Below are positions 35,675-60,110 of a stretch of DNA of 64,000 nucleotides, piece by piece. Origin of the DNA: Octopus bimaculoides (lineage: Eukaryota); assembly GCF_001194135.2 (NCBI RefSeq), contig NC_069004.1, forward strand, positions 8,455,942 through 8,519,941, written 5' to 3'. The position numbers and the translations under genes are program-made. The first letter of the stretch is position 1. The number at the start of each line of letters is the position of its first letter. The notes under the pieces are model-generated. The model ran no database searches and had not been told where the DNA came from. It worked only from the letters and a program-made list of their open reading frames with translations.

Positions 35675-35726
35675 TTTTCTGAATTTTTTTTTTTTTCTCA
35701 CACAACAAATATGGTATTTCATCTGT

Positions 35727-37143: not shown

Positions 37144-37223
37144 GTAAAGAGTACGCCCACCACCCGTTTTCGGCGTAACCCTAACCCTAAACGCCGAAAA
37201 CGGATGGTGTGCGTATTCTTTAC
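37144..37223. repeat. 33-bp-stem hairpin with an (CCCTAA)2-type loop
   Basis: 37144-37176 pairs with 37191-37223 (3 mismatches); the loop is AACCCTAACCCTAA. Confidence 0.9.
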
Positions 37224-37284
37224 ATTTGCCGAATGAACGGATAAATGGAAGAAACATTATTTCGAAAAATTATTTCTTAAAAAA

Positions 37285-37470
37285 AAGGTAACCTAACCAA
37301 TAACCGTATACATTTTTGGGGAAAAAAATCCTGTCCCTAAAATGTCTATGGTAGATAATTCTCTACAGGAAATACATATTTAGTCACAGACAGGAGAGAA
37401 CTTGTATCAATGATGTATGCGGGGAAATCATTCCACTTGCTTTAACAGTTTTTCTTAACTTCATCGATCG
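37285..37470 (+). pseudogene. Degenerate ZF repeat antisense to ZNF-E, inside its intron 1
   Basis: AAAAAGGTAACCTAAC...CACAGACAGGAGAGAACTTGTATCAATGATGTATGCGGGGAAATCATTC resembles KGNL...[14 protein letters not shown]. Homologous to 55270-55400. Confidence 0.6.
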
Positions 37471-37924
37471 TTGAGAGTTTTAAGAAAATATATTTAATGC
37501 GGAATCTTTCTTTCAACGGCCTTGTATTCAAGACCATTCTTGAAACAAAACAGGCGACATTAATATACAAACAAAACATCTATTACACTATTTTTCTTTT
37601 GTTTCTTGGCTCCGGTGAGGCGTCTCGGAACATTCAGGATGTGAATCTTCCGAGGATTCTCCCCCCCCCTTCGCGAGCGCGCGTTTTTTTCTTCATATTC
37701 GTTCCCAGCAAGTTGTTTTACACCTATTAGAATAATTTATTATTTTTATTTCCCACCGGGTCAAACCCTTTAGTTTGACCCAAAACATGTAGCATATCGT
37801 AATATCCATTCACCTCCTTTCTTCTCTTCTAAGTTTTCACACTTACATATTTTTTTTTACATAATTACTACAGCATCCAAGTGAAACACAATTCTACTAT
37901 TTATATACATTATTACAACATTAA

Positions 37925-38090
37925 AGAAACGTTGATCAACTTACTGTTTTCCGGAAGAAATCATTTCATTGTTAGATTAAGGTTTACAAATGGTTTAACA
38001 ACTTAATGCGACATCAACATTTATAGAGCTTAATATATTCCTGTTTTGTCAGACAGTGAAACTGACTGTAGCCGCAGTTTCGATACGTAA
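37925..38090 (-). promoter_or_regulatory. Exon 1 module of ZNF-E, partly eroded (donor 37944; acceptor 36119)
   Basis: AACGTTGATCAACTTAC donor and AGCCGCAGTTTCGATA core are retained, with internal deletions. Confidence 0.65.
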
Positions 38091-38769
38091 TATTTAGAAG
38101 GATATATTTAAGATAAAATATTTATGTTATTGACACATTTTGTTAGATTTAGAATATCAAAAGGATATTATTCGGTAGAAGAAATTCATTAAAAATTTTA
38201 ATCATTTATTCAGATATAAAAACAAAGTCACTACGATCAAGAAAGACTAAACAATTAAAAGTAAAATTAAATTAATTACAGTTATAAATCCACACATAGG
38301 ACCACCTTTCGTTGTACACATTAAAGAATCCTCCTCATTACACATATTATATATGGGATACTAAAATTACACGAACAAAACAATCACCGTAGTCCCATAA
38401 TATCTCAAATATATGCACCTGCACATTCAATCGCGAAACAAAAAAGCAAGTATTATCAGAATATACGCACCTGATAAACGTAATATTCGTATAAGATCAC
38501 CTGACGATTTTTTTCAGATTTTTGTAGAAAGTAATACAAACTATATCTCCGCATAGGTTATCTGCTAATGTCCCGCTGGCAGAAACTAGAAATCGTATTA
38601 GCGAAAGTATATAAACTCCCCCAAAATAAAGCCAGCCGCGATATCGTTTACTTTTTACTTGTTTCAGTCATTAGACTACGGCAGAATTTTAGTCGAATGA
38701 ATCGACACCATTATTTACTTTTTAAGCCTGGTACTTACTCTATTAGTCACTTCAGTCGAATCGCTATGT

Positions 38770-39125
38770 TGTTGTTGGCACTCCGTCGCTTACGACGTCG
38801 AGGGTTCCAGTTGATCCGATCAACAGAACAGCCTGCTCGTGAAATTAACGTGCAAATGGCTGAGCACTCCACAGACACGTGTACCCTTAACGTAGTTCTC
38901 GGGGATATTCAGCGTGACAAGGCTGGCCCCTTTTAATTACAGGCACAACAGAAACAGGAAGTAAGAGATGGTTGTGGTGGAAGAGTACAGCAGGGTTCGC
39001 CACCATCCCCTGCCGGAGCCTCGTGGAGCTTTAGGTGTTTTCGCTCAATAAACACTCACAAAGCAAGGTCTGGGAATCGAAACCGCGAGTCCGCTGCCCT
39101 AACCACTGGGCCATTGCGCCTCCAC
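38770..39125 (-). mobile_element. SINE-alpha with 13-bp TSD, inserted in a SINE-beta remnant
   Basis: TSD CGAATCGCTATGT at 38757-38769 and 39126-39138. The left flank (38660-38760) resembles the SINE-beta body. Confidence 0.9.
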
Positions 39126-39139
39126 CGAATCGCTATGTA

Positions 39140-39580
39140 ATGTAGATGTGTTTCTAAGTAGGTGAATTATTTGATAGAGGACCGTCCACTGATATCAATG
39201 TAGTTTCTCTCCTTTCTAAATACATTTGTGAGCAACCAATGCTTTTCAGCAAATGATGGACTTACCAGAGATATGGCTTCTCTCCTGAAAGAGTACATTT
39301 GTAAGATGTTAAAGTACTGTGATTTACAACAGATGTTGTAGTGATATGGTTTCTGTCCTGTATGAATGCGTTTATGCCTAGTGACATCACAATTTTAGAA
39401 GAATGGTTTACCACAGATCTAACAGCAAAGTGGTTTCTTTCTTGCATGAATATGTTTGACACTCAGTATACCCTTAGTAAAAGATTTACCACAGATATCA
39501 GTGATATGGTTTCTCTCCTACATGTATATGTTTCTGTACCTCCATAACTGAATAATTTACCAGATGTCACAGTGTATCCT
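39140..39580 (-). pseudogene. Remnant 3' part of a tenth ZNF unit
   Basis: Frameshifted fingers ([37 protein letters not shown]) end in the gene-terminal signature GTGTTTCTAAGTAGGTGA seen at the ends of B and F. Confidence 0.75.
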
Positions 39581-40159
39581 GGACGTACACAGACTAGAAC
39601 ATCAATTGGTTGTTCACAACCTGAATACCTTTCATTACAAATCCACTCAATCAGAGCAGACCTGGGCTACACAGCTACCACTACTGTTTTGTGCTTTCTT
39701 GCTCTTATGGCAGTAATAAAAATCCCTGTAAATGATTATTTATATTTTTTAGGCCAAGGGCTCTATAATGAAACAATTGGTAGAAAAGTGAACTCTCTTG
39801 AGATGTTAAGAGATGAAATTTAACTCCGGTCAACTTTAAATTTGATCAACTGAAGATCAATAAAGCAAATACCAACCAAGAACTAATATTACACAAACCC
39901 TCAAAAAAAAAAAAAAAAATTTCAATGCATTTGCTAATGTTATGGATATTTATTTATTTACAGAAACTAATTGCAGCAAAAAATTAAGTTAGTACCTAAA
40001 CTTTTACTGCAACATTCCTACATCAATATTCTCACACAAAAGAACAAATACTTCCTTAACACTTTGACCTCAAACATTTTTGACTACTACAAACATATTA
40101 TATATTATTTCTTCCTTTACAAATCCCAGTTTATTGATGATGATCTTGACACACTAAAA

Positions 40160-40990
40160 TTACACATCAAGATCAGGCTTGCATCTTTTGTTTCCACTTT
40201 TCCCATATCCCTTACATTCTATTTTCACACCACCATATAACATTGCAGTTCAGTGTATTTTATACTTGATGAAAGTATACTCTTGTTACTTACCTGATTT
40301 TCCCTCACTATATTCTTATTCTGGTTACAATGCTTTCAGACCTCTTTCTTCCATTGCAGACTACAGGATAGTTACAGAAACTATCAACTACTTGTATAAA
40401 ACCTTCTGAACATTACAACCAATTCATTTTACTAGTGCTTTGACTGCTAACTACTACTGTGCATATCACACAGTCTTTATTCACTTGTCAGCATATCCTT
40501 GATTGCACTACATTTATGCACAAACAGATTACACTGAATGGAATTCCTACCTCATAACCTAATAACACTACTATTTCCCTGATGGTATCAGAATGTTGTC
40601 TTCATTTCTATTTACTGAAACATTTCCATGAGAATTTGAAGCACAATTGATCTGAGATTTTGTTTCCACGTATGGAATTTCTTCTCTAAATTTTCCACAA
40701 TCTCTGCTATAAGGAATAAGTCTGCAGCATAGGTGAGGTTTTAAATTCCTGATATAATTTCAAGAACTATAAAGAAGACAAGGTTGAGAACCAAGCCTTG
40801 ATGGGTACCTAACTGAACCGTTAATTCCTCACACAACTCCTCACCAGCTCTTATTTTTCTACCTATGTCTCTCGCTATTTTATCCCCTATTTTCAACTCA
40901 GACATCACTATGAGCAAAGGCATGTCTACTGACCAAAATAATTTCTTCAGTCATATATCTAATGTTTTTTGTTCAATACTAGAGCAGATT
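40160..40990 (-). mobile_element. RTE-like LINE reverse-transcriptase fragment
   Basis: KIRAGEELCEELTVQLGTHQGLVLNLVFFIVLEII resembles the RT motif V.VG.HQGSVLSP.LF. 40160-40560 is homologous to 48240-48610. Confidence 0.65.
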
Positions 40991-41196
40991 AGACAGATGT
41001 TTTCCCTGTTAATCCTATATCTTCAAAGGCACAGAGCAACCAGTCAAAATGTTAAAATCATCAGTTTCAGGTTGTTGTTGTTGCCAACAGAAAAGAAGAG
41101 GAGGAGGAGAAGAAAACATCATTGAAGTGGTTTTGTTGTTAGTTTTATTGTTAGGGAATCGTGAAGTGTTCTGGGTGGCTTTGGATAGGAGATGTG

Positions 41197-41584
41197 GGTT
41201 GGTTGGTTGGAACTCCGTCACTTGTGACAACAAGGGTTCCAGTTGATCCGATCAACGGAACAGCCTGCTCGTGAAATTAACGTGCAAGTGGCTGAGTACT
41301 CCACAGACATGTGTACCCTTAACTTAGTTCTCGGGGATATTCAGCGTGACAGTGTGACAAGGCTGACCCTTTGAAATACAGGCACAACAGAAACAGGAAG
41401 AAAGAGTGAGAGAAAGTTGTGGTGAAAGAGTACAGCAGGGTTCGCCACCATCCCCTGCCGGAGCCTCGTGAGGCTGTAGGTGTTTTCGCTCAATAAACAC
41501 TCACAACGCCCGGTCTGGGAATCAAAACCATGATCCTATGACCGTGAATCCGCTGCTCTAACCACTGGGCCATTGCGCCTCCAC
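41197..41584 (-). mobile_element. SINE-alpha in the 3' flank of ZNF-F
   Basis: Full head and body; the tail is (CCAA)n. No TSD recognised. Confidence 0.9.
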
Positions 41585-42224
41585 TATCCTAAACTACAAA
41601 ATTCTCAAAACAGAGTTTTTCTTAAATTGTATTATACTGGATTAAAATGCATCATAACCTTTATTCATTTTGATTAAAATTTTTCTCAATTTCAGGTGGA
41701 ATTTGAACTTGAAAGTTTCTGGAATAGTAGTCATATTTTTTTTCTCAATCAGAGCTGACTGGGGAGCTGTGTTAGCTCCATATTTTCAGCAATGTGCAAA
41801 ACTCAGAATGAATCAATTTGCAAAGTATGAAATAAACCAAAATAAGTCATGTAAAATTTTTATCAAATGCAATAAAATACGAACAACAATCTGATCCATC
41901 TAAAATACAATTCATTTTCATAATCCCAAATCAATCAGTAATGAATCCAATGTAATGTAGTTAATGAATCAATAGTTATTACAACTACAGAACAAAAATA
42001 AAAAGGATCCAAGTACAAGATGAGTCAGGAATAAGATTTCACTTGTACATTCCCTTTTGGGGGGCATGGTTTCTTTAGCTGGCTGTCCTAACTATCACCA
42101 TGAATTTCACAGTGCACTGGATGTATTTTGCTGTGGAGCCAGCAGTAGACAAGTTGCTATGTCCAAGACAAGATTAGAATTCTGTCTCCATTCATTTGCC
42201 TCCCATTTTACAGAGAGAATGTTT

Positions 42225-44144
42225 TTAAGTAGGTGAGTCATTTGTTACAGAGACTGATTTATCAGAGCCACCATTGGGATAAGGCTTTCCTTTGAAATGA
42301 ATAAATTTGTGTTTAGTAAGGTCACCATTCCTAGAAAATGATTTTTCACAGATATCACACTGATATGGTTTCTCGCCTGTATGAATGTATTTATGAGTAG
42401 TTAAGGCATTACTAGCAGAGAATGACTTACCACAGATATTACAGTCATATGGTTTTTCTCTGGTATGGATGCGTTTGTGCTTAGTTACATCGCTATTTTG
42501 AAAGAAAGATTTACCACAAAACTCACATTGATATGGTTTCTCTCCTGTATGAATACGTCTATGAATTTTTAAATGACTTGTTTGAGAGAATGATTTACCA
42601 CAGATATCACAATGGTATGGTCTTTCGCCTGTATGAATACGGTTGTGAATAGTTAAATAACATGTTTGAGAGAATGATTTACCACAGATATCACAGTGAT
42701 ATAGCTTCTCTGCGATGTCAGAGTGATATGGTTTCTCACCTGTATGGATACGTACATGCCTAGTTAGGTCATAACTGCGAGTGAATGATTTACCACAAAC
42801 ATCACAGCGAAATGGTTTCTCTCCTGTATGAGTGTGTTTATGATTAGTTAATTGGGTATTTTGACAGAATGATTTGCTACAGATATCACACTGATATGGC
42901 TTTTCCCCTGAATGAATACGTTTATGAGCAGTTAATGCATTTCCACGGGTGAATGATTTACTACAGATATCACAGTGAAATGGCTTTTCTCCAGTATGAA
43001 TACGTTTATGAACAGTTAATGCACTTCCACTTGTATACGATTTTCCACAGATTTCACAATGATATAGCTTCTCACCAGTATGAGTGTATCTATGTCTTTT
43101 TAACTGACCTTTTTCAGAGAAAGATTTAGCACAGATATTACAGTGATACGGCTTTTCACCTGTATGAAAACGCATATGCCTAGTTAGGTCATAACGTCGA
43201 AAGAATGACTTACTACAGACACTACAGTGATAAGGTTTCTCTCCTGTATGAATACGTTTGTGAGCAGTTAAAGTACTTCCGTAATCAAATGACTTACCAC
43301 AGATATCACAGTGATATGGTTTCTCTTTTGTATGAATGCGTCTGTTGTGTAGTGTTAAATGACTTGTGAGAGGGAAAGATTTACCACAGATATCACAGTG
43401 ATATGGTTTTTCCCCAGAATGAATACGTTTGTGAATAGTTAATAAACTTGGATAAGTAAATGATTTACCACAAATATCACAATGATATGGCATCACTTTT
43501 GCGTGATTGCCTTTCTCTCCCATATGAATGCGTCTCTTGTGTATCGTTAACTGACTTGATTGAGAGAATGATTTACCACAAGTATCACAGTGATATGGTT
43601 TTTCCCCCGTGTGAATACGTCTGTGAACGATTAATGCACTTCCATCAGTGAATGACTTACCACAGATATCACACTGATATGGCTTCTCTCCAGTATGAAT
43701 ACGGTTATGAGAATTTAAGTGATATCTTTGAAAGAATGATTTTCCACAGATATCACAGTGATACGACTTCTTTCCTGTGTGAATGTATTTGTGTTTGGTT
43801 AATTTGTATGTTTCAGAGAATGATTCACCACAAACATTACACTGATATGGTTTTTCACCTGTATGAGTACGTATATGGCTAGTTAAGCTACTAGTGCGAG
43901 AGAATGCTTTACCGCAGATATTGCAATGATACGGTTTCTCACCTGTGTGAGTACGTATGTGATTTGTTAAGTTACTTCTTAAAGCAAATGATTTACCACA
44001 GATATCACAGTTGAATGGTTTTTCTCCTGTGTGAATACATTTGTGTGTAACAAGTTTACTTTTCAGAGAGAATGACTTTTTACAGATATCACACTGGTAT
44101 GATGATTCCCCAATTCCTTTTGGTGATTCTTCAGGCAAATTCAT
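42225..44144 (-). CDS. ZNF-F: poly-C2H2 protein, 21 fingers; start MNLPEESPK
   Basis: Intact ORF with the homologous ATG at 44144 and two in-frame finger-deletion scars. Confidence 0.95.
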
Positions 44145-44664
44145 TCTTCTGCAATATTTTTTTCTCATAAAAATATTTGGATTTTTCCTTTTTTTTTTTT
44201 TTTTACCTTTTATTATTTACTCCTATGTTGATCAAAACTTTTCTAATGCAATATTTACATGAACTTTCATCTCTGTTGATTTCAGAAATGGATATCAAGG
44301 TTCTTTGTAAATCAGTCCAAATTCAACTGGAACACAAAATCATCTTGTACACACTCCAGACAACAAAGGAAAGAAACAGCACGCTCACAAGAAATACTTA
44401 TCGGTTTTTCTGTGAAACATTTTTCTTTTGTCTTTAAAAGATTATATAGATATTGATGTTATGTCTTTAATGACAATGTCATCTGATATTCTGAAATGAT
44501 AGAGAAATAGCATAAGATATAAATGTTAATTAAAAAATAGAGATTTTACAATAATTTTATTTAGCATGATAAACTATAAACTTTTACCTCAAGAATTGAA
44601 CTTTACATTTGAATTTGTACTTAAAATTACATGATACAAAATTGTGTGTAGTTTACAAAGGTTA

Positions 44665-45295
44665 GGTGTTTCAGGAGGGGTGGGGAACTTCGGAAAATTC
44701 ACCGGTGTCCACTTCAATTCGCCTTAACTTTCAAGAAAAGGGATATTTTTTAAAGAGATCCTTTACAAATATACCTCGGACTATGAAGATTCCGAGGACA
44801 TAGGAATTTTGTGGGAAAATAAATTGGGGGTTACTTCTGAGAATCGTTCCTCACTCGGGGGTGTTTCGGAACAAGTCGTTCATATTTGTTTCATTTTCTC
44901 CGTTTTGTGCGTTTGTGCATCCATAGATTTTTACGCACACACACACATATGTAATTAAAAAAGTTCAAATGGGGAATTATTTCATTCAATATCATGTTTA
45001 TTATAGAGATTATGCAACAAATTATATATTACACATCTATACTTAACTGTGCGTATATATTCCTTATTTTTGCTTCTGCCTTTCTATTAGAACCGTTTNN
45101 NNNNNNNNAACGGTTCTCAGAAATAACCCTCAATTGTTTTCCCCACAAATTCCTATGTCCTCGGAATCTAGAAAGCCCGAGTTATATTTGTAGAGAATTT
45201 CATTTAAAATATCCATTTTCTTGAAAGTTAAGACGAACTGAAGTGGACGCCGGTGAATTTTCCGAAATTCCCCACCCCATCCCTCCTAAAAGACT
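44665..45295. mobile_element. Foldback/MITE-like element with about 185-bp inverted arms in ZNF-F intron 1
   Basis: 44665-44850 is the reverse complement of 45110-45295 (for example TTCCGAGGACATAGGAATTTTGTGGGAAAA versus TTTTCCCCACAAATTCCTATGTCCTCGGAA). Confidence 0.85.
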
Positions 45296-46614
45296 TTCCT
45301 CCAAAACTTTTGTATATTCGAAATCTACATGACAACACATATTCGAAGAAAATTTCATTAAAAAATATCCATTTTCCCGAAAGTTATGATCATCCAAAGT
45401 TGTGGTGGTGGGGAGCAGAAATCTGTAGTTATGCCCAAAATCCTTCCTTTGGCATCAGAAACAGAAACGAACACAAAATTAAAATATCTAGGTCAAATGA
45501 AAGAGGATCAGTTTAATAATGGTACATGATAAGAAATTAACGAAACTCGACTAGATGAAAAAGATTCAACATAAAATATGCTCTATAGCTTCTTCACGAT
45601 CTTCTAGAATGGCCCTCCCCCGATATATTTAAGGGGAAGAGATTGAAATTAGTCATTACTCATTTTACCCCGTTTTAGACATTTGAAAATAATCAAATTA
45701 GACATTAGTGTGAGAAAAATTGACTTAGAATCCAACAGAGAAAAGAATATTAATTATTAAACACCAAAAATTATCCATATATTTTTATTAGCAAACTCAA
45801 TTACAAAATCGGATTGAGGAAAAATTTCTTGAAAAAAAAAAAAAGTACCTGTTACCTAACTGTTTCGGACACTGAACTTTGCTGACCAACTTTTTTTACT
45901 CCTAAAGGTGATGCAACAGTACAAAATGACGATGCAATATTTACAATGTATTGATTTCAAATAGACAGGGAGAAAATAACGAGCAATCAGAAGTAACTCA
46001 TTTTACTCCAGTTAATAATTTTGCCCCCCTCACCACCACCCTACAAAGGAAATATTGCACGTATGCAAATGAAAGTAGCAAATGTGTCAAAGATTACCTA
46101 CCGTTCAATTTCATTTCTATTCTTGTAAGTTAATTTCTAGAGGATCTTTTCAAAAGCAGAGATCAATATTTCAGTTTGGTAGGATTGATTATCTTCTACA
46201 TGAAAATCAGGACATGAAAATAATTTTACCGAAGTCACTGCTTAGCGCTTCTGTGCTCTTAAAGGAAATTTTTTTTTTTCTTACCATTGTCGTACGTTTT
46301 CAAATTTATATAATTACTGTATCTGAAAGGGTGCAGGTAGAATGGGAGGGGTGCTTAAAACTGGGATGGGGAGAAGGAATTAAAATTTTGAAAACGTGCT
46401 TTTTTTTTGCAAAATCGTAATCTTCTATATCGAAAACCTAGGAATCCGAAAAATGTTTCGACAAAACAAAACTGGAAGTGGGAGCAGTGCTTACTCTTTA
46501 CTTCTGTCGCTGAAAGTAACATCTTTTCTCATTTATGTTTGCATTTCAGTATGATTATTTATTACCTTATCCTCCAAGTAAAACACAATTATTTACATAC
46601 ATTATTACAGCCTT

Positions 46615-46960
46615 AAAATAAACGTTTATGAACTTACCGTTTTCAGACGTAAACAGTGAATCAGTGCATTGAACGTTTCCACTAAACTATCAAAGTAAAT
46701 ATCTGATAGTTAGAACGCGATTTACCAATGTTTCATTAGCTTAATTCTATGGTGACATTCAAGGAATTCCTAATTAGTACAACCATAAAATACTAAAATA
46801 TCACAATGAACAAGCGAAGCTGACTTTATGTCACCAACCGCATTTTCGATCTCTTATAAACTAATGTCCCCTTGGAGATGGCGTGAGCTGACAAGGAGAC
46901 AGTGGGTGATACTGGTGAAGATGTGATTAGCCTTCGAAATAAATTATTGAAACCATTTAT
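46615..46960 (-). promoter_or_regulatory. Promoter/exon 1 module of ZNF-F (donor 46637; acceptor 44491)
   Basis: Conserved core and donor. Confidence 0.75.
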
Positions 46961-47889
46961 AATGCTTACATTTCAAAAGTATTTTTAAGAAAATTTTTTT
47001 TTTTTATCGCCAGCACTTGAATGTGATGTTTGTGTGAAGAAACACTGATAACAAACGACTGGACAATTTTAGTTTCGGTTTCGTGAAAATTACTTTTTCT
47101 CCGTTGAAGGAAGATGCCCACCAACAAAAGTTTGACAACGACCGCTTTAAACAATTATAACCATTCCTTGTTTTTGATAAACATATTCCCCATGTATGTA
47201 TTATATTGTGTGTATACACACACACACACACACATTCTGTCTGGTTATAATTTTCATTTATGTATTATTATAGGTATGTAACAAGATTTTAAAATTGTAT
47301 ATTTTGTCTGTGTGCTGAAGCAAATAATTAACTCATTGCAACACGTGTGTATATATAAAGACATAAAAATATGAAAAGTGTTTTCTGCCTATTTCTTTAC
47401 ACAATGTGGTTTGGACTCTGCATTTTAGCTTAGCTTTTGAAGTGACGATTGTGTTCATATTATAGTAAGATGTAAGAGTTTAACACAGAACTGTCTATTG
47501 AACCCAAACCTTGTGCTGCCATGCTGTACATGATAACACATCACCATCATTTAATATCTGTTTTCCATGCCGGCTTCAGTTGGATGGTGTGACTAAACTG
47601 GATCATGTTCCAGTCTGATTTGACTTGGTTTCTACAGCTGGATGCCCTTCCTAATGCCAAAGTAATACATCTGTCATTATAGATAAACTAGAATGTTATT
47701 GATTATATGACTGGTAACTTTGGAAGTATATTTGTGACACCATGGGGCTAGATGTGGCAGTTTACTCTTATTTAAGTATTTCTCCAATATTTATTTCCCA
47801 AGAAAGCACAAATTTATGCAATTCAACAATTTAAACTCAAGCGTTTTTATTACTGCAAACGTATCTTATATCTTATTCCTTCATTTCTA

Positions 47890-48610
47890 AATACTGGTTC
47901 ACTGATGATGATGATCATTATCATCATCATCACCACCACCTCACACGCCTATTTCCTTGGGTTGTACAAGTCCTTTTCAACAGTGTCTTATCATTTATTG
48001 TATTTTACAAAAGAAACACATCCTGGGATCAGCTTTCATCATACCTGCCTTGGTCTTCCTTTCCCACAAGGATTTCCTGACACTTGTACATCCCATCTGT
48101 CATCATCTACACACACGCAATGTCTGTAACAATACATTCCTTCTTGCATGCTCCATTTCATTCCTCACTTCACTTATACCTTGCTGTTCATGCACTCAAA
48201 AATTTCTCATCTAGCACACTAAGCTTGCTTCATTTCTTTCCAGCATTCATAAATCCCTTACATTCAATGCCCAAACTACTATTTAGCACTGTAGCTCATA
48301 CAATGTCTCCTCTTGCCTGATGAGAGTATTCTCTTGTTATTTACTTGTTTCTTCCCCTCCACCCCACCATATTCTTATTCTGGTGACTATACTTACAAAA
48401 TTCCTTCATCCGCTGCAGATGAGGTCACCTCAGTTACATACACTATCAACTACCTGTATACAGCCTTTTGAATATTCCAAACAATTTATGTTACTGGTGC
48501 TCTGACTGCTAACTACTTCTGTGCATTTACCACAAACTCACTTATCAGCCTATTTTTGATTCCATTACACCTTCTTAGCACCAACAGACAACACTGAATA
48601 TACTCTATGG
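47890..48610 (-). mobile_element. RTE-like LINE 3' fragment
   Basis: The minus strand gives VSGNPCGKGRPRQV (RGRP motif at the end of RTE ORF2), followed by a (TGA/TGG)n tail. Shares about 370 bp with 40160-40560. Confidence 0.6.
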
Positions 48611-49116: not shown

Positions 49117-50913
49117 CTAAGATGAATGATTAGTCACAGCAAATGATTCACCACACATATAATTTTGATATGGATTTTCTCCAGAATGAGTACGTTTGTG
49201 CTTAGTCAAATCACTATTTTGAGAAAATGATTTACCACAGATATTGCAATGATATGGTTTCTGCCCTGTATGAATGTATTTATGAGTGGTTAAGGAACTA
49301 CTTCCAGAAAAAGATTTACCACAGATATTACAGTGGTATGGTTTTTCGCCTGTATGAATGCGTTTGTGCTTAGTCACATCACTATTTTGGAAGAATGATT
49401 TACCACAGATATCGCACTGATAAGGTTTCTCTCCTGTATGAATACGTCTGTGAATAGTTAAATGAGCAGTTTGAGAGAATGACTTACCACAGACATCACA
49501 ATGATATGGTTTTTCTCCAGTATGGGTGCGTTTGTGAGTAGTTAAACGAGTTAACTGCGAGAATGATTTACCACAGATATCACAATGATGTAACTTCTCT
49601 CCTGTATGTATATGACTATGTTCAGTGAACTTACTTCTTGCAGAGAACAATTTACCGCAGATTTCACAGTGATATGGTTTTTCACCTGTGTGTATACGTA
49701 TGTGTTCAGTTAAAGCATTACCATGAAAAAATGATTTACCACAGATATCACACCGATATGGTCTCTCACCAGTATGAATATTTCTATGTTTATTTAAAGT
49801 GTTTTGATCAGAGTATGATTTACCACAGATATCACAGGAAAATGGTCTTTCTGCTGTATGAAAACGTCTGTTGTGCATCTTTAATCCACTTGTCTGTGAA
49901 AATGATTTGCCACAAATATCACAGTGATATGGTTTTTCTCCTGTATGAATACGCTTGTGCTGAGTTAAAGCACTTCCTTCAGTAAAAGATTTACCACAGA
50001 TATCACAGTGATATGGCTTCTCTCCTGTATGAATACGTTTGTGACCAGTTAAATGAACTCTCTGAAAGAACGACTTTCCACAAATATCACAGTGAAATAA
50101 CTTCTCACCAGTATGAATACGTTTATGTTTAGTTAAATTACCAGCTTCAGAGAATGATTTACCACAGATATCACAGTGATATGGTTTCACTCCTGTATGA
50201 ATATATTTGTGTTTGGTCAACTTATTTCCTTCAGAGAATGATTCACCACAAATATTACATTGATATGGTTTCTCACCTGTATGAATACGTTTGTGGCTAG
50301 TTAAGCGATCACCTCGAGAGAATGATTTACCACAAATATCACAGTGATATGGTCTTTCCCCTGTATGAGTACGTATGTGAGTGGTTAAGTGACTTTTTAT
50401 AGAGAACGATTTACCACATACATCACAGTGATATGGTTTCTCTCCTGTATGAATGTATGTGTGTATTTTTAATTTACTTCCTTCGGAGAAAGATTCATTA
50501 CAGATATTACAATGATATGGTTTCTCACCTGTATGAATACGTCTATGACTAGTTAAGCGATCCTTTTGAGAGAATGATTTACTACAGAGATCACAATGAT
50601 ATGGTTTTTCCCCTGTGTGAATACGTATGTGATTGGTTAAGTGACCTCTTACAGAGAATGATTTACCGCAGATATCACAGTGAAATGGCTTTTCTCCGGT
50701 ATGGATGCGAATGTGAGTTGTTAAGGCACTTTCTTTAGGGAATACTTTGTCACAGATATTACAATGATAGGCTTTCTCTCCTGCATGAACACATTTATGT
50801 GTAGTTAAGACACCCTTTTTGGAGAATGACTTTTTACAGATGCTGCACTGATATGATTTTTTTTGTAACTCTCCAGGAAAAAAACAATCATTTAAATTCA
50901 TCACATAATTCAT
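49117..50913 (-). CDS. ZNF-G: 598-aa poly-C2H2 protein, 20 fingers
   Basis: Intact ORF with an ATG context homologous to the other paralogs. Confidence 0.95.
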   Translation of the reverse strand: MNYVMNLNDCFFPGELQKKSYQCSICKKSFSKKGVLTTHKCVHAGEKAYHCNICDKVFPKESALTTHIRIHTGEKPFHCDICGKSFSVRGHLTNHIRIHTGEKPYHCDLCSKSFSQKDRLTSHRRIHTGEKPYHCNICNESFSEGSKLKIHTYIHTGEKPYHCDVCGKSFSIKSHLTTHIRTHTGERPYHCDICGKSFSRGDRLTSHKRIHTGEKPYQCNICGESFSEGNKLTKHKYIHTGVKPYHCDICGKSFSEAGNLTKHKRIHTGEKLFHCDICGKSFFQRVHLTGHKRIHTGEKPYHCDICGKSFTEGSALTQHKRIHTGEKPYHCDICGKSFSQTSGLKMHNRRFHTAERPFSCDICGKSYSDQNTLNKHRNIHTGERPYRCDICGKSFFHGNALTEHIRIHTGEKPYHCEICGKLFSARSKFTEHSHIHTGEKLHHCDICGKSFSQLTRLTTHKRTHTGEKPYHCDVCGKSFSQTAHLTIHRRIHTGEKPYQCDICGKSFFQNSDVTKHKRIHTGEKPYHCNICGKSFSGSSSLTTHKYIHTGQKPYHCNICGKSFSQNSDLTKHKRTHSGENPYQNYMCGESFAVTNHSS

Positions 50914-51656
50914 TCTTCTATAGCTTTACTTTCTCTGACCGCAGTATATGGATATCTTCCTTTGTTTTGTAGTTATATATTCCTAGTTATTCAAAACATT
51001 TCTGCCACAATACTGCCATCAACTATTATCTGGAAAGGGTTGCACAGTCCTTTGTAAAATTGACCAGGTTTAAGTAGGATACAATATCATGCACATTCCA
51101 GATAATGAAGCAGAGAATGATTGCTAATATTTCACATTAACTCAATAATAAATCTATAGAGACAGAATTACATCTGTTCTATATATCTTTCTTTAGTCTT
51201 TAACAGTTGATAGTCAATTCTTTAATGCCAATGTCATTTGATATTCTGAAATGATAAAGAACGAGAGTAAGATATCAAAGATAATTAAAAAGTAGAAATC
51301 TAACAGTGAAATTTCACTACAATTAAATAGTGATAAACTATAAACTTTCACCTCAACAAATGAACTTCAGATTTTGATTTATCAAAATTACAGTATACAA
51401 AGTTGCGTAAAGTTTACAGACTACAGACACACCTTCAGAATGTGTAACATTACCTATGTTATAATAAATGACAGTGGTTTTATATTATATCTGGACTAGT
51501 GTCTTTGGTTGTTGTATCTTCAGAACTTCTTCAGGTGCCTCACATTAAATCTGCAGCAGTACACAGACCTCACTCCACTGTTGTTCCAAGAACATTTTCC
51601 TCGTTAGTTATTCTACTACTTGTGATGCCACTAATTTGATACACTTCAACCAAAGT

Positions 51657-51699
<43 letters not shown>

Positions 51700-52419
51700 N
51701 NNNNNNNNNNNNNNNNNNNNNNNNNNNNNNNNNNNNNNNNNNNNNNNNNNNNNNNNNNNNNNNNNNNNNNNNNNNNNNNNNNNNNNNNNNNNNNNNNNNN
51801 NNNNNNNNNNNNNNNNNNNNNNNNNNNNNNNNNNNNNNNNNNNNNNNNNNNNNNNNNNNNNNNNNNATATATATATATATATATATATATAAATTGACTT
51901 GCCCAGAGATTGAACTCATTTCAATAAGATCAACTATTACACCTAACAATCTATACTTATATTCACTATACCAACTTTTATAGAATAGTGGACAATAACT
52001 TTCTTCTCTCTGTGGATAATTATTTGTCGCCGTAACGTAATTCCTGGTCATTCCTTACTAAGCAGACCTATGAAAATTTGGCTTCTATTTCAAGCAGATC
52101 GAATTACTATATAGTTTCCATTCCAGGGGCTCATTGTTTTGTTTGGGCCTTCTATCAAAGTAGAGTTGTTTTCATCGCTGCTATGAATTTTATAACAGAT
52201 CAAACGAAAGGAAACATAGATGAACTAAGAAAAGACGACTGAATGAAGGAAAAACATAAAATATACCTTTCAAAAAGGTAAACAAACTACTCATGAATAC
52301 ATTCGTACAGGAAAGACTCCATATCAGTCTTATATGTGGTAGATTATTCCCCGTAGAAAGTGGTTTTACTTGCAAGCCTAAAAATGCAATACAGTTACTC
52401 TTTCACGTCTATCCTAAAA

Positions 52420-52560
52420 GGATAGAAGGTATATCACGGTCATAACTGTGATAAATTGTTCTCTACGCGAAGTAGCTTAACCACGCACAAATACATGCAG
52501 ATATGAGAGAAGCTGTATGACTGTTGATATCTGTGGTAAATTATTCTTGATGATTTTAAA
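52420..52560 (+). pseudogene. Degenerate ZF repeat antisense to ZNF-G, inside its intron 1
   Basis: Translates as HNCDKLFSTRSSLTTHKYMQI*EKLYDC, then after a frameshift DICGKLF. Confidence 0.75.
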
Positions 52561-53254
52561 ATCATTTTTGTAACTTCATAAAATTTTTAATGACAGTCTC
52601 AATGTTAAATATCCCCATATATACCTGTCTTCAATGACCTTGCAGCGAAGGCTAATAATACTTTATAACCGAATTGGCGACATTAACTTAGGTGAAATCA
52701 AGTCTTAATAAATTCTAGCTTTTCTCTTCACTTACTTGTTATGTCCATTAGAAAAATATTTTTACAGAATAGCAAAAGCATGAAGAAAAAAAAAAGACCA
52801 AAAATAACGAAACCACACACACACACAGAATATTAATTTTCATCGTGTAGGATTTCAGATTTTCTTTCTTTTTCTTTTCTTATTTAAGATGAATTACAGT
52901 ACAGGAATTTGAGAATGAAGAATACTACAAAATTACGAAAAAGAAGAAATCATGTTAATGGTGGCAGCTTTTGCGAATGCACAATTAAAGGCGAGAGGAT
53001 TGAGACAACTGGATTTTTTTTTTAATTTTTAAACGATTCATTAAGTATTTTGCATCATGAGATTCTATACAATCTCGAAAAATCGCGAAAAAAAATCTAT
53101 TTCATTCGCGAGAGAAATTCCGAAAGACAATCAATCACTGTATCAGGAAGAAATGCTTCTTCCTACTGTTATGTTCTCACTTCAGTATAATTAATTTCAT
53201 TATTCCTCCAAGTAAAGCACAATTCTGTTATTTACAAATATTAGTACGGTATAG

Positions 53255-53470
53255 AAAGAAACGTTTGTCAACTTACCGTTTTCAAATCTAAACAGTAAAT
53301 CAATGGGTTATATTTTCACCAAAGCATATATATCTGTTTGTTAGAATGAGGTTTTAGCAATTCTTTATCAACCTCATTAGACATCAACATTGAAGAAATT
53401 ACTATATTATCACAATGAACAAGTGAAGCTGACTATATGTCTCCAGCCGTACTTTCGATGTCTAACATTA
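53255..53470 (-). promoter_or_regulatory. Exon 1 module of ZNF-G (donor 53276; acceptor 51246)
   Basis: Conserved core and donor. The upstream promoter homology is replaced by a Tc1 relic. Confidence 0.75.
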
Positions 53471-53477
53471 CAATCTC

Positions 53478-53700
53478 TGTGTGAATTAGTGCATTATCAT
53501 CCTGAAAGATTGCGTTTCCCTCTGGAAACTGTTCTGCAACCATAGGATGAATTTGATTAGGTAAAATGCTTAAATAGTCTTAACTATTAATTTTGCCATG
53601 AAGGGAAACCATTGGGCCAGCAGATTTCCAAGATATAGAACCCCCCCAGATCATCATAGATCCTCCTCCATGTTTAACAATTGGAAGAAAGCAGGAAAAA
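53478..53700 (-). mobile_element. Tc1 (DD34E) transposase fragment
   Basis: CFLPIVKHGGGSMMIWG...GPMVSLHGKINS*DYLSIL...NAIFQDDNALIH. Confidence 0.85.
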
Positions 53701-53999
53701 AATAGCAGTTATTTTATGATACCAGCAGGTATGTCTAGCAGACGAACATCCATCGCCGAAGATGACCAAAATGAGGGCGAAATCACGTGAGCTGGTGGTC
53801 TCCAAGCTACAATAGTAGGAAGTTCTCTCCCTGCTTGCAAAGCTCACCGAATAACCAGCTGGAATATCGTCTGTTCCCCTAGAACACCTACATTTTGGTG
53901 GTGATAAACATTAATGCTAATATTGTCCAATGGTTTATTATCAGAGTAATCTACTCACTAATAACATGCCCAATGCATATTCTAAGGATTAATAAAGAT

Positions 54000-54380
54000 C
54001 TTTTTGAAAATGTTTTAAAACGTAATTATTGTATCTGGTTTAAATATTTTATTTTTGAGAAAAATCACATCTTCACTGGAAACATCCAGCTCTCCCATTC
54101 CTTATGAGCTCATGAGATCTCCAAGGGGACACTACCAACGAGTTTTAATATGACATCGAAAGTGCGGCTATATCAGCTTCACTTGTTTGTTGTGGTAATT
54201 TAGTGTTTTGTTGTTAAAGGGTTTTCTTGAATGTCGATGTAGAACAAAGTTGGTAAAACATCGGTAAATCTCATTGTAACAGTCAGATATTTATTGTGGT
54301 AGTTTGGTGAAAATATATAACATACTGATTGACTGTTTACATCTGAAAATGGTAAGTTGATAGACGTTTGATTTGATGCT
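54000..54380 (+). promoter_or_regulatory. Promoter/exon 1 module of ZNF-H (donor 54352; acceptor 55457)
   Basis: TGACATCGAAAGTGCGGC...CTGAAAATG|GTAAGTTGATAG, in the plus orientation matching the gene. Confidence 0.75.
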
Positions 54381-54553
54381 GTAATATTGTCTGTAAATAA
54401 TAAAATTGTTTCACTTGAAGGATAAGGTATATTGAAATGAAACAAAACAACAGGGAAATATATTTCTTTCAGATACAATAATTATATAAATGTGCAAACT
54501 CATAACAACATTAGTAAAAGATATTTCTTCCAAGAATACAGTAATTATATTGT

Positions 54554-54895
54554 TGTTGGCACTCCGTCGCTTACGACGTCAAGGGTTCCAGTTGATCCGA
54601 TCAACGGAACAGCCTGCTCGTGAAATTAACGTGCAAGTGGCTGAGCACTCCACAGACACGTGTACCCTTAACGTAGTTCTCGGGGATATTCAGCGTGACA
54701 CAGTGTGACAAGGCTGACCCATTGAATTACAGGCACAACAGAAACAGGAAGAAAGAGAAAGTTGTGGTGAAAGAGTACAGAAGGGTTCGCCACCATCCCC
54801 TGCCGGAGCCTCGTGTTTTCGCTCAGTAAACACTCACAACGCCCGATCTGGGAATCGAAACCGCTGCCCTAACCACTGGGCCATTGCGCCTCCAC
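54554..54895 (-). mobile_element. SINE-alpha with 11-bp TSD in ZNF-H intron 1
   Basis: TSD AATTATATTGT at 54543-54553 and 54896-54906. Confidence 0.9.
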
Positions 54896-55269
54896 AATTA
54901 TATTGTACTTGGAATAAATAACAACTTTGAAGAACAAATTTCCATATCTTCACTTTGATGTAGAAGATAATACTTTTAAACCTCACATGTTGATCTCTAT
55001 TTTTAAAAATATATGTTGGAAATTAATTTAAAAGCCAAGACTAGTAATTAAGTGAAGTAAATATTTGCATAATTAAAATATTTCATTGATATGTTTATAT
55101 TGCCTCGAATAGTGACAAGGTCTTTCGAGGAAGAGACGCCACATTGAATGTGGAGGAATTAAATGTTGAGACTCACGTTTAAGATTTGCTGTAGTTATGA
55201 AAAACAACTGTAAAAGTATCTGGAATGTCTTATCCCAGATAACAGTGACAGCTTCTCTTGTGATTACGT

Positions 55270-55400
55270 ACATAAATAGTGAGATTCTTTCCTGCAGAAA
55301 ATGATTTACAATAGGTAACTCTGTGATTTCGTTTCTTCCCCATATGAATGCATTTATTAGTAGTTAGGTTACCTTTTTGAGAACTATTCTCTTTTTGCTA
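55270..55400 (-). pseudogene. Degenerate ZF repeat antisense to ZNF-H, inside its intron 1
   Basis: The minus strand translates as SQKGNLTTNKCIHMGKKRNHRVTYCKSFSAGKNLTIY. Confidence 0.75.
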
Positions 55401-55816
55401 ATGTTTTTACTTCGTTCAGTTTTTTATATATCTTTTATGGTTTCTCTGTCATTTCAGAAAATCAAATGTCATCAACATCAAAGATCCATTATCAGTATTT
55501 GTCACCATTTACAGACTTGAGAAAGCAGTTATACAGAAAACTTACAACACTGTTTCTATAAATTTATCTTTGAGTTACTGACAGTTACTCTTCCAAGTGA
55601 AACATTTCTCTTCATTGTATAGAATGGGTATAAGATGATTTTGCATTACACTTAAATTTGGACAGATTTACAAATGAATTTCATTGCTATTTCTGAAACC
55701 AGCAGAAGGAAAACTGTTGATGGAAATATTGCAGTAGAAGAATTTTGATCAATGTTGTAGTAGATAAAGAAGAAATATTGATGTAATTGTCCCGAGAAAA
55801 GAAAAATTAAAGGGAA

Positions 55817-57034
55817 ATGAATTTTCCTCAAGAATTGCCAAAGGAAGTGGGAAAATCACTTTATCATTGTGATATTTGTCAAAAGACATTCTCTCTAAAA
55901 AGTAGCCTTAGTAATCATAAAACCATCCACTCAGCAGAGAAACGACATAATTGTGATATCTGTGGTAAATCATTCCCTCGATTACAAACCTTAATTGTTC
56001 ACAAGCGTACTCATACTGGAGAGAAACCATATCACTGTGATATCTGTGGTAAATCATTCACTGTAAAAGGCACATTAACTCAACATAGACATGTACATAC
56101 AGGAGAGAAACCACATAACTGTGATGTATGCAGTAAATCATTCTCTCAATTGCATAGTTTAATTACTCACAAACACATTCATACAGGTGAACAACCATAT
56201 GAATGTTGTATCTGTGGTAAATCATTCTCTCAAATGCATAATTTAATTGCTCACAAACGCATTCATACAGGTGAAAAACCATATGGATGTAATATCTGTG
56301 GTAAATCATTCTCTCTAAGGTGTCACTTAGATGGTCACAAGCGTACTCATACAGGTGAAAAACCATATCATTGTGATATCTGTGGTAAATCATTCTCTCA
56401 GGCTAATGGCCTAACTCGCCACATACGCATTCATACAGGTGAAAAACCATATCAGTGTAACATTTGTGGTGAATCATTCTCTGAAACTGGTAATTTAACT
56501 AAACACAAACACATTCATACAGGTGAGAAGTCATATCATTGTGATATCTGTGGGAAATCGTTCTTTCAAAAAGCTCATTTAAATTCTCACAAACGCATTC
56601 ATACTGGAGAGAAACCATATCATTGTGATATCTGCGGTAAATCATTCTCTCATGGGAATGTCTTAAATACTCACAAACACATTCATACAGGAGAGAAACC
56701 ACATTCCTGTGAAATCTGTGGCAAATCATTCAGTGATAGCGGTTCATTAGTTCTTCACAAACGTATTCATACAGGAGAGAAGCCATATCACTGCGATATC
56801 TGTGGTGAATCATTCACTTACGGAAGTGCATTAACTGGTCACAAGCGTATTCATACAGGAGAGGATCCATATCGCTGTAATATCTGTGGTAAATCACTTT
56901 CTACTAGTTCTAGCTTAATTAGGCACATACGTATTCATACAGGTGAAAAGCCATATCACTGTCATATCTGTGGTAAATCATTCACAGTAACAAGTCAGTT
57001 AAGTACACACTACGACTCTCATACAGGAAAATAG
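55817..57034 (+). CDS. ZNF-H: 405-aa poly-C2H2 protein, 14 fingers, ended by a premature stop
   Basis: The ORF ends HTGK* (GGA AAA TAG CTG TAT CAC TGT) in the middle of a TGEKLYHC linker. Confidence 0.9.
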
Positions 57035-57400
57035 CTGTATCACTGTGATATCTGTAAGAAATCATTCTCTTAAGCAAGTATATAATTATTCACAGACATA
57101 TTTATACTGGAGAGAAACCCTTTCATGTGATTTTTATGGTTAATCTTTCTTCCAAAATAGTGATATAACTAAGTGCAGTGGCATTTATACAGAAGAAAAT
57201 TCATATTACTGTACTATCTGTGAGATAGCATTCTTTTTAAGTAGTGCCTGAACTACTCACAAATGCCTTAATAAAGGAGAAAAATTACACAATTGTGATA
57301 TCTGTGGTTTATCACTTTCTGAAAATAGTAATTAACCTAAATAGATATAACCATTCTAGGGGGAAAAAAAACCATCACAGTGTTATGTGTAATACATCAC
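57035..57400 (+). pseudogene. Decayed C-terminal fingers of ZNF-H
   Basis: [12 protein letters not shown]..., then SFFQNSDITK (the QNSDV finger of the family C-terminal block). Confidence 0.8.
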
Positions 57401-57874
57401 TCATTTACTTACAAATATACACTCTGTAAACAGAGATATCATCACTCTAAAATTGTCAGGAATATAGCAGCCTCCCTAATGTTGGATCTGCAATAACATA
57501 CCTTACAATACACTGTCAAATTGATCATGTTTGGTAGTGCAACCAACCATAAAAACTATGCCCTCAAAACATACATGTGAAATGTTTTACATAACTCATA
57601 GAACGGACCTTTTTTCTTTGTTTTGTTTTTTTTTGTGATACTTTTAATAAATGATTATATATATTGCATTGCATTGATTATTTATTGATTTGAACTTATT
57701 AGAATGAGTTGTCCTAGAAGGATCTAAACGTTGTTTGTTTTTGTTTGCCCATTTCATTGCATCTGATAAAGTTTTACTGAACATTTTGGTTATCCAATAC
57801 TTTGCACTCTGATTCATTTTGTGTTTTGCACATTGACTACAAATATGCTTATTTCAACATAAATAAAGCTGAAA

Positions 57875-58135
57875 CTATTTAGTTCCAGCTCTGACTTGCA
57901 TTTTCCTAAACTTTTCTAAGCAACCTATTTTCCATAGAATTAGCCACAGAACATTTTGATTAACAGTATCAAATGCCTTGCTTAAATCAACAAAGCAATG
58001 GTATAGAGCAAGATACTGTTCAATGCACTTTTCCTGCAGTTGGCTGATAGTAAAGATACAATCAACTGTGCCCCTAGAGGAACAAAAACCACATTGAAAC
58101 TCAGACACTATATTTGGAACTATGAAGGTATTTAA
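57875..58135 (-). mobile_element. RTE-clade LINE RT fragment
   Basis: EFQCGFCSSRGTVDCIFTISQLQEKCIEQYLALYHCFVDLSKAFDTVNQNVLW matches the conserved RT domains 1-3 of RTE elements. Confidence 0.9.
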
Positions 58136-58207
58136 ACACCCTTAGAGAATGCAGGTAAGTACCAAAGCAAAATCCCATGAAAATTACTTCTCAGATCCTA
58201 TATATAT

Positions 58208-58544
58208 TCGGAGCCCCCCTTTGGTCACGAATGACCATGGGATTGCACCTAGAAAGTTACCCTTCGAGGCACAAGTCCGAGCAAGGTTGTTTATGGAGGA
58301 TCACCAGTCGCCCATGCATACCGGTCTCCCCTCTCCATGCTACTGATGTTATCCAAGGGAAAAGCAGAGGCCGATAAAGCTTGGCACCTGTGACATCGCA
58401 ACTCATTTCTACAGCTGAGTAAACTGGATCAACGTGAAATAATGTGTCTTGCTCAAGAACACAATACGCAGCCCGGTCCAGGATTCTAACTGACAACCTC
58501 ACAGTCATAAGTTCGACACTAACCACTGAGCTATGCACCTTCAC
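58208..58544 (-). mobile_element. SINE-delta, longer copy
   Basis: Same head and body as the 19095 copy plus about 75 bp of internal sequence. Confidence 0.85.
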
Positions 58545-59399
58545 CATATATATATATATATATATATATNNNNNNNNNNCACACACACACACATGCATAC
58601 ATATGTATGTATATGTTTACCTGTTTCAGTTATTTGACTGCAGCCATCCTCAGCCACTGCCTTGATTAAATTTGCCATGCCTCTGTCTGTCTACTCCAGA
58701 TCACATGTGTTCTGCCTTTCACTTTCCTGACCCAGTCTTACTTACTCCTCTTTCCCTTCTTTAAACTGATATTCACCATTAACCACAACTCCACTGTTGT
58801 TCACCATTCACTTCTGTCCCCATCAGCCACTCTCCTTTTACACAATCAGTGTTACCCATTTACCCAGTCCAATCTTGTTGACCATTTTAATTCTGTCCAC
58901 CTTCCTGTAACTTGAGGGTATGCTCTGACATCCCTTTACCATTTTCTTTTCTTTTCTAACTAGAGTAACCATGTATCTGCTCTACCTCAAAATACCTGTT
59001 TCTATCCATCTATCATACTTTAACTTCTCATTACCTGGCAAAAAGCCACATCCCTCAAATGATTTGCTAACCTCACTTGTGCTGGTACCATGTAAATGGC
59101 ACCCAGTACACTCTTCGCAGAGTATAGAGGGTATAGACCTTTACCTCGTCGGCTCCTGTCAAACTGCCCAAACCATGCCAGCAGGGAAAACAGATGCTAA
59201 GCAATGATGATGATGTCCTTGATATTACTATATAATTCATGTCTTTGTGCTTGTGTTTCAAAACAACGAACGATTATAATATTCCAAAACGGTGGTTGCC
59301 ACACTGCTGCAGATAAGCATTTCTTTTCACAGAAACATGGCACTTCCCCTCTGTTTAGCAATAAAATCAGAAGTGGGAGAGAAAAACAGGACTAAATTT

Positions 59400-59790
59400 T
59401 ATCCAGTGGTTTACTATCAGTATTCTTACCGACTTATATAATGTCTTATTCATATTCTAAAGATCGATGATCTTAAGAAAATGCTCTTAGATCGTAAGTA
59501 TCTCGTCTCACGATAACTCCAAGGGGACGCTATCATTGCGGTTGTAATAACTGACATCGAAAGTGCGGCTGGAGACATAAAGTCAGCTTCATCTGTTATT
59601 TGTAATAAGTTAGGATTTTATTGTTGAACAAATTGGGGAATTACTTTGATACAGGCGCAGAAAGAAGTTGATAAAATGTTAGTAAACCTCATTTTAACAA
59701 TCAGATAATTAGTTTGGTGAAAATGCACAACGCCCTGATTCACTTTACATCTGAAAACGGTAAGTTGATAAACGTTTGTTTTAATGCTGT
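59400..59790 (+). promoter_or_regulatory. Promoter/exon 1 module of ZNF-I (donor 59760; acceptor 60898)
   Basis: TGACATCGAAAGTGCGGCTGGAGACATAAAGTCAGCTTCA...CTGAAAACG|GTAAGTTGATAAACGTTTG. Confidence 0.75.
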
Positions 59791-60034
59791 AATAATTAAT
59801 AATGTGTGTAAATAATAGAATTGTGTTTTACTTGGTGGATAAGATCAATCATATTGAAGTAAAAACATATAACAATGAGAAAAGATAATAACAATGAGAA
59901 AAGTAATTATATAAACGTAAAAACTCAGCGACATTGGTAAAAGATATTTTCTTCGAGAATCTCCGATCTGGATATGATGGAGTTACGGAAAACAACTGTC
60001 AAAGCAACTGGAATGATTTATTTCGTTGAAAGGC

Positions 60035-60110
60035 TACTCTCTGCGGAGAATGATTTACAACAAATAAGACTACGATATTGAATACATTTGGGCGATCTTT
60101 TCTTTATCCA
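60035..60110 (-). pseudogene. Short degenerate ZF repeat antisense to ZNF-I, inside its intron 1
   Basis: The minus strand gives ICCKSFSAESSL. It lies at the same position relative to shared intron sequence (GAAAACAACTGT..AAG..CTGGAATG) as the remnant in H. Confidence 0.55.

Follow-up and report, generated by a model that had tools for sequence, protein, structure and literature searches.

Five of the ten genes examined in a tandem C2H2 zinc-finger (ZF) cluster of Octopus bimaculoides carry a degraded stretch of the family's finger-coding repeat that is antisense to the host gene and plausibly lies within its first intron. The homology of these antisense relics, flanking sequence included, points to a single ancestral insertion copied with the duplication unit, and in silico they pair with the finger-coding exon beyond chance. 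We think it probable, without regarding the matter as settled, that they are decaying fragments of an inverted finger array with, at most, by-product RNA editing. The window, by which we mean the whole 64,000-nucleotide (nt) stretch that was analysed, corresponds to chromosome CM046624.1 at ~8,455,942-8,519,941, a range inferred from match coordinates, with the open reading frames (ORFs) of genes D, G, H, and I found as exact matches in GCA_001194135.2. It contains nine large ZF ORFs, here called A to I, and a tenth gene, J (- strand), lies directly beyond its end.

Detection and decay of the antisense relics

From 131 in-register fingers of the cluster we built an 84-nt ZF nucleotide profile; run against the window with nhmmer, it detected ZF-like DNA outside the coding arrays in only five places (E<0.05). 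Four of these are relics that lie in E, G, H, and I and run opposite to the host gene, as had been claimed for these genes in an earlier interpretation of the DNA (the sequence-only reading), and they lie at the coordinates named there or within ~50 nt of them. A further relic lies in J, and the profile matched nothing in the sequenced parts of the putative first intron of A, B, C, D, or F; the intron of A is gap-free and lacks a relic. The relics are as follows:

37267..37434, + strand (host -): relic E, decayed, ~1.5-2 ZF units; nhmmer 37342-37409, E=0.0051
52257..52569, + strand (host -): relic G, ~3.3 ZF units; nhmmer 52267-52326, 52331-52370, 52440-52520 (E=7.8e-11), and 52525-52547
55223..55396, - strand (host +): relic H, ~2 ZF units; nhmmer 55324-55382 (E=3.9e-5) and 55251-55315 (E=9.7e-4)
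60003..60112, - strand (host +): relic I, less than one ZF unit; nhmmer 60031-60066, E=0.0028
Window-equivalent 67959-68068; 16765-16874 and 17270-17329 in L004, + strand: relic J, antisense to J; E=4e-10

Relic G is the best-preserved copy, with up to 75% identity over 130 nt to fingers of the coding sequences (CDSs), relic E matches many CDS fingers at 60-73% identity (both by blastn), and relic I is the shortest and most decayed. Relic H sits directly upstream of a proximal intron block common to all genes, and relic J occupies the same position, between the J donor (L004 17909, - strand) and the coding exon. In tblastn searches with a ZF consensus, G (3e-5) and H (1.3e-4) were detected, and E (2.2) and I (1.5) were weak when taken alone; the latter two are secured by their homology to the other relic blocks. 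Six-frame translation reveals degenerate finger motifs opposite each host, such as YHGHNCDKLFSTRSSLTTHKYMQI*EKLYDC in G and GNLTTNKCIHMGKKRNHRVTYCKSFSAGKNLTIYVRNHKRSCHC in H, with weaker finger traces in E and I, and the translations are broken by stops, frameshifts, and lost zinc ligands. When they were compared with the Pfam zf-C2H2 model, only G gave a match, which was sub-threshold at 17.2 bits against a cut-off of 25.2. The relics are remnants of the C2H2 coding repeat and, because they fall below the Pfam threshold, are not working fingers.

Within the E intron, copies of a 213-bp direct repeat (36902-37114 and 37579-37783, 84% identity) lie on both sides of the relic, which adjoins an 80-nt palindrome (37144-37223) with telomere-like TAACCCTAACCCTAA at its centre. 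The direct repeat and palindrome could be a transposon.

Shared origin of the relics

The relic blocks of E, G, H, I, and J align with each other, and the alignments extend into flanks that are not ZF-like. Within the window, the aligned segments are:

E 37252-37525 with H 55406-55115
G 52202-52359 with H 55454-55289
I 60085-60172 with G 52245-52158
I 59940-60019 with E 37495-37425

The 16-mer AAAAAGGTAACCTAAC, for which 0.08 matches are expected by chance, occurs exactly at E 37282 (+ strand) and at H 55363-55378 (- strand), and with two mismatches at G 52272 (+ strand). Together, the aligned flanks and the exact 16-mer bear out the earlier proposal that the E and H relics are homologous and that an inverted ZF segment moved with the duplication unit. 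The relic flanks show no similarity to the 5' leaders or 3' flanks of the ZF genes, and the fragment therefore derives from the interior of an array. Because the relics and their flanks are homologous, the constant antisense orientation counts as one inherited event, not four or five.

Two other origins were considered and rejected. Four independent insertions are ruled out by the homologous flanks, and a dispersed transposon carrying a finger is ruled out by the finding that copies in the window occur only at the equivalent intron position.

Position of the relics relative to the host transcripts

Each of the nine genes has one copy of a block of ~230-450 base pairs (bp) upstream of it, and the block is always on the host strand. 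Its alignment contains an invariant ...AAA(A/C)(G/A) followed, across the putative exon boundary, by GTAAGTTGATAAACGTTT, which is a near-consensus 5' splice site and is also present in J. This element lies 1.4-3.5 kilobases (kb) upstream of the host, and the columns beside the donor vary. The donor GT is located at 3826, 15802, 22295, 30917, 37944, 46637, and 53276 (all - strand) and at 54352 and 59760 (both + strand). At the other end of the putative intron, an AG is found at -6/-5 from the ATG in eight of nine genes, usually after a pyrimidine, and the tract ahead of this putative acceptor is A-rich. The upstream element is probably a non-coding exon 1 with a promoter; it also holds a conserved ATCGAAA.TGCGGCTGGAGACATAAAGTCAGCTTCA block. 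The elements are:

37945..38090 (upstream limit approximate), - strand: exon-1-like element of E, a shortened copy; donor CA followed by GTAAGT, GT at 37944; conserved block 37878-37951
53277..53490 (upstream limit approximate), - strand: exon-1-like element of G; donor GT 53276; conserved block 53139-53462
54120..54351 (upstream limit approximate), + strand: exon-1-like element of H, head-to-head with the G element; donor GT 54352; conserved block 53900-54480
59545..59759 (upstream limit approximate), + strand: exon-1-like element of I; donor GT 59760; conserved block 59507-59864
3769-4223, 15780-16202, 22273-22509, 30777-31259, and 46563-47072, all - strand: conserved upstream elements of other genes

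In every case the relic is located downstream of the host's donor and ahead of the coding exon. The sequence-only reading had placed the relics in intron 1, and sequence conservation makes this placement plausible: the conserved donor upstream and the AG before the ATG favour it.

A different arrangement, which we consider unlikely, would put the relics outside the host transcripts. In that case the GTAAGT element would not be exon 1, transcription would start from the conserved 400-nt block just upstream of the ATG, and the relic would be an upstream remnant of an old divergent neighbour, as in the present head-to-head pair G/H, which shows that ZF genes in this orientation occur here. Conservation of the proximal 400 nt in all genes fits such an arrangement, as does an A-rich rather than pyrimidine-rich tract before the putative acceptor, and when the D, G, H, and I proteins were looked up, the genome record with its ORF-type gene calls was the only result and no transcript contigs appeared. 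However, GTAAGTT is invariant in ten copies amid varying columns, the element keeps its strand and its distance range upstream of the host, and the AG at -6/-5 recurs in nearly every gene, all of which argue against this arrangement.

Pairing between the relics and the finger-coding exon

Each relic, taken as it reads on the host strand, was paired with its host CDS in RNAduplex, with dinucleotide shuffles as controls for E, G, H, and I and mononucleotide shuffles for J. The duplex energies (kcal/mol) were -111.6 for E against -71.0±5.0 for shuffles (z -8.1), -194.6 for G against -117.2±6.3 (z -12.3), -109.3 for H against -71.2±4.3 (z -8.9), and -65.4 for I against -44.4±3.6 (z -5.8), with z -9.3 for J, and controls with the relic in sense orientation remained at shuffle level. 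Pairing was also better than that of all 40 real intron windows of equal length per relic (z -3.3 to -5.7). The duplexes comprise 88-244 bp, their longest uninterrupted helices measure 10-16 bp, and cofolding gains -31 to -84 kcal/mol over self-folding. The pairing potential that the sequence-only reading had supposed, between relic and downstream CDS repeats, is real, with a duplex beyond chance, and energies equal to those of shuffled controls, the first outcome named there as counting against it, were not seen.

Minimum free energy folds were then computed for whole contexts of 1.7-2.8 kb of putative pre-mRNA, with shuffled-relic controls. In these folds, 118 of 168 relic nt paired with the CDS in E (controls 0 and 0), 118 of 313 in G (controls 10 and 19), and 114 of 174 in H (controls 0-72), with almost no self-pairing of the E and H relics. 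Relic I, with 15 of 110 nt paired (controls 0-29), did no better than shuffles. Pairing between relic and exon is thermodynamically possible in E, G, H, and J.

A published definition of intramolecular double-stranded RNA (dsRNA) calls for a reverse-complement match of >=80% identity over >=20 nt (PMC9989829). Matches of this kind between an intron and its own CDS number 11 in G, two in I, one in E, and none in H or in the relic-less introns, which places G within the definition, E and I at its margin, and H outside it. The best reverse-complement matches, 23 nt at 95.7%, fall on the CDICGKSF codons, which are the family's most conserved nucleotides; in G, relic positions 52525-52547 show 95.7% complementarity over 23 nt with several blocks of CDICGKSF codons in the gene's own CDS. 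Pairing by codon class in RNAduplex was 0.60 for helix and 0.63 for framework codons, values that are uninformative about the pairing site within the finger.

Conservation, host specificity, and possible functions

Conservation was tested among paralogues only. Mean pairwise identity was ~0.5-0.7 in the ZF-like part of the relics versus 0.64-0.73 in the adjoining non-ZF intron, and the relics therefore show no excess conservation over adjacent intron. Each relic was also matched to the first 1300 nt of the nine CDSs. The G relic gave duplex energies of -190 with its own host, -191 with I, and -189 with E, and the H relic gave -109 kcal/mol with its own host, among the weakest, and -104 to -118 with the other CDSs. 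Complementarity of the relics is generic family similarity and is not host-matched. Rough neighbour-joining (NJ) trees, one built from the exon-1 element and one from the proximal intron together with the N-terminus, recovered the relic carriers as non-monophyletic, with A grouping with H, D with J, and B with C. Because the carriers do not form a clade and A lacks a relic in a gap-free intron, the relic would be ancestral and have been lost several times. Vertebrate ZNFs dominated the results of an orthologue search with the complete G protein, and a search with the N-terminal 127 amino acids (aa) of G found short proteins only, at <=69% identity, and no orthologue.

These results bear on the proposal of the sequence-only reading that the relics are a built-in editing guide. 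According to this proposal, each relic would be a maintained editing-complementary sequence (ECS) whose pairing with the finger repeats leads octopus ADAR to recode them and thereby diversify the fingers. Its structural premises stand, as does the pairing: the relics pair strongly in silico relative to both shuffles and real intron windows, whole-context folds join the E, G, and H relics to the exon, only relic-bearing introns match their own CDS at >=80% over >=20 nt, and coleoids recode extensively in neural tissue (PMC9068888, PMC5705066). The evolutionary evidence, however, speaks against a maintained role. The ZF-complementary part has no excess conservation, matching is not host-specific, the gap-free A intron lacks a relic and the carriers are non-monophyletic in the rough trees, and the decayed I relic pairs at shuffle level in context while H has no match at >=80% over 20 nt. 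Furthermore, the near-perfect stretches fall on framework codons (CDICGKSF) and not on the DNA-contacting helix codons, and a search of the available literature found no report of such a guide. We therefore regard a maintained guide as quite unlikely. A version in which the one inherited antisense fragment serves as a 'one guide, many targets' complement, pairing with any free unit of the tandem 84-nt array so that octopus ADAR would recode many fingers per transcript, is improbable; if true, it would mean RNA-level diversification of a rapidly expanding transcription-factor family, copied with each duplication.

The same pairing evidence could be read as a role of the relic/exon duplex other than recoding, such as slower removal of intron 1, nuclear retention, or damping of the ZF family in trans by small RNAs. 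Damping in trans is conceivable because the relic is antisense to the family consensus, and equal pairing with all paralogues would suit a family-wide effect of this kind. However, the evolutionary arguments against a maintained guide apply equally here, and an intron that has been spliced out cannot retain a mature mRNA, making any such role very improbable.

A probable decaying fragment of an inverted finger array

In the explanation that we favour, an inverted fragment of a ZF array would already have been part of the 5' intron in the gene that founded this local subfamily. The fragment would have been copied with the whole unit of exon 1, intron 1, and coding exon at each duplication, in either orientation, which would explain why the relic is always antisense to its host. 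It would then have decayed about as fast as the intron around it, with deletion in some copies. In unspliced RNA, the relic, as the reverse complement of the 84-nt repeat of the family, could form an imperfect long-range duplex with the finger exon, in which predicted helices reach 10-16 bp. By analogy with inverted Alu pairs, any adenosine-to-inosine (A-to-I) editing that the relic causes would most likely be an unselected by-product. Neutrality of the relics and their location within the pre-mRNA are what we infer from these results, while their presence, strand, mutual homology, and in-silico pairing were shown, together with the absence of excess conservation and of host matching.

Several observations weigh against this explanation. 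The NJ trees are rough and the introns are mosaic, and absence of the relic in B, C, D, and F is uncertain, as each of these introns holds an assembly gap. The GKSF codons are the best-kept relic columns, and near-perfect complements of 21-23 nt are present in G and I. Retention of the CGKSF codons could hint at constraint or gene conversion; with only five related copies, it is inseparable from ancestry or alignment anchoring. Finally, retention of the relic in five of ten genes despite heavy divergence is not negligible.

Organisation of the cluster

The genes of the window, with coordinates from the ORF list, are:

876-2444, - strand: gene A ORF
9087-12253, - strand: gene B ORF, split by a gap
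19742-20563, - strand: gene C ORF
24593-27628, - strand: gene D ORF
33104-35722, - strand: gene E ORF; coding exon 33104..35674, with the ATG of MNSEELPKE at 35674 and a ZF array of 26 canonical fingers
42225-44168, - strand: gene F ORF
49117..50913, - strand: coding exon of host G, a ZF array of 598 aa; exact match in GCA_001194135.2
55817..57389, + strand: coding exon of host H; the ORF ends at 57034, with broken fingers on to 57389
61147-62502, + strand: gene I ORF; coding exon 61195..62502, 435 aa

G and H are a head-to-head inverted pair, and the entire G-H interval is arranged as an inverted duplication. Their exon-1-like elements (G, - strand; H, + strand) point apart within 53276-54352, with donors ~1.1 kb apart, resembling a bidirectional promoter. 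Three genes look broken or mis-assembled: B (9087-12253, - strand), which consists of two ORFs around a gap at 10529-10628; C (18948-19629, - strand), where fingers run on out of frame below the 273-aa ORF; and H (57035-57389, + strand), where fingers extend beyond the stop codon. Besides the antisense intronic relics, the sole non-genic ZF-like sequence in the window is a sense-oriented fragment:

39198-39571, - strand: ZF pseudogene fragment, E-F intergenic, ~4.5 units; nhmmer up to E=1e-17

Between A and B, the ORFs at 5494-6066 and 6438-6959 (both + strand) gave sub-threshold Pfam matches to DUF4371 (18.7 bits) and the hAT dimerisation domain (18.6 bits), and are probably a decayed hAT-type transposase.

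None of the relics or coding exons of E, G, H, and I is interrupted by an assembly gap. Gaps in the surrounding sequence are:

51700-51866: 167 N, in putative intron 1 of G between relic and CDS, with (TA)n on both sides
58570-58579: intergenic between H and I, between (TA)n and (CA)n; no bearing on linkage of relic and host
45099-45108: 10 N, in the F intron within F-specific sequence

The G blocks that flank the gap at 51700-51866 (intron positions 1204-1397 and 1604-2241) are collinear with adjacent blocks in the ungapped E intron, and likewise in that of I. Therefore, the order and orientation of the G intron across this gap are supported, and its length is not. At 45099-45108, the F intron sequence has no paralogous counterpart by which its continuity could be judged. 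A short inverted repeat (...agaaccgttt / aacggttct...) at 45085-45125 flanks this 10-N gap, which may be an assembly break at a hairpin.

Comparison with known systems

At present, the relics offer a clean, testable example of segmental duplication leaving a putatively intronic inverted copy, by which coding exons become potential dsRNA. If they did direct editing, this would be the first gene family to carry its own heritable, repeat-wide editing guide, and massive C2H2 expansion and massive A-to-I recoding, the two oddities for which coleoid genomes are best known, would thereby be connected. Recoding in coleoids is abundant and neural, and the conserved sequence that surrounds the sites is believed to preserve dsRNA (PMC5705066, PMC9068888). 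Vertebrates and insects provide established cases of intronic ECSs and intronic inducer elements (PMC7045468, PMC3479170, PMC5705066), and our search of the available literature found no report of finger-derived intronic complements or ZNF-focused editing in coleoids.

Like the ECS of the GluA2 (Gria2) Q/R site and the ECSs of insects (PMC7045468, PMC5705066), the octopus relic is a putatively intronic complement of a nearby coding exon and could form the duplex that ADAR needs. However, the ECSs known so far are short and site-specific, are conserved between species, and cannot be removed without loss of editing, whereas the octopus relic, a paralogous repeat in decay, matches dozens of repeats to a similar degree and has no excess conservation. 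The intronic editing-inducer hairpin of Gabra-3 (PMC3479170) is a distant intronic element, and the relic could similarly raise editing of an exon. In Gabra-3 the element's own hairpin recruits ADAR, whereas the relic would pair directly with the exon. In mouse oocytes, as the groups of Tam and of Watanabe reportedly described in 2008, antisense or hairpin dsRNA derived from pseudogenes gives rise to endogenous small interfering RNAs. There, too, a decayed inverse gene copy complements functional paralogues, but that system uses separate or hairpin transcripts and Dicer, while the octopus relic sits in the putative intron of its own host. The closest likeness in how the relic would act is to inverted Alu pairs and other inverted repeats that serve as promiscuous ADAR substrates, in which diverged, opposite-orientation repeat copies in one transcript form a long imperfect duplex (PMC5705066, PMC9989829). 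Unlike in Alu pairs, the arms here are a protein-coding exon array and a gene fragment rather than transposable elements, and identity between relic and exon is lower, at ~60-75%, with only short stretches at >=80%. Editing of inverted Alu pairs is mostly non-adaptive.

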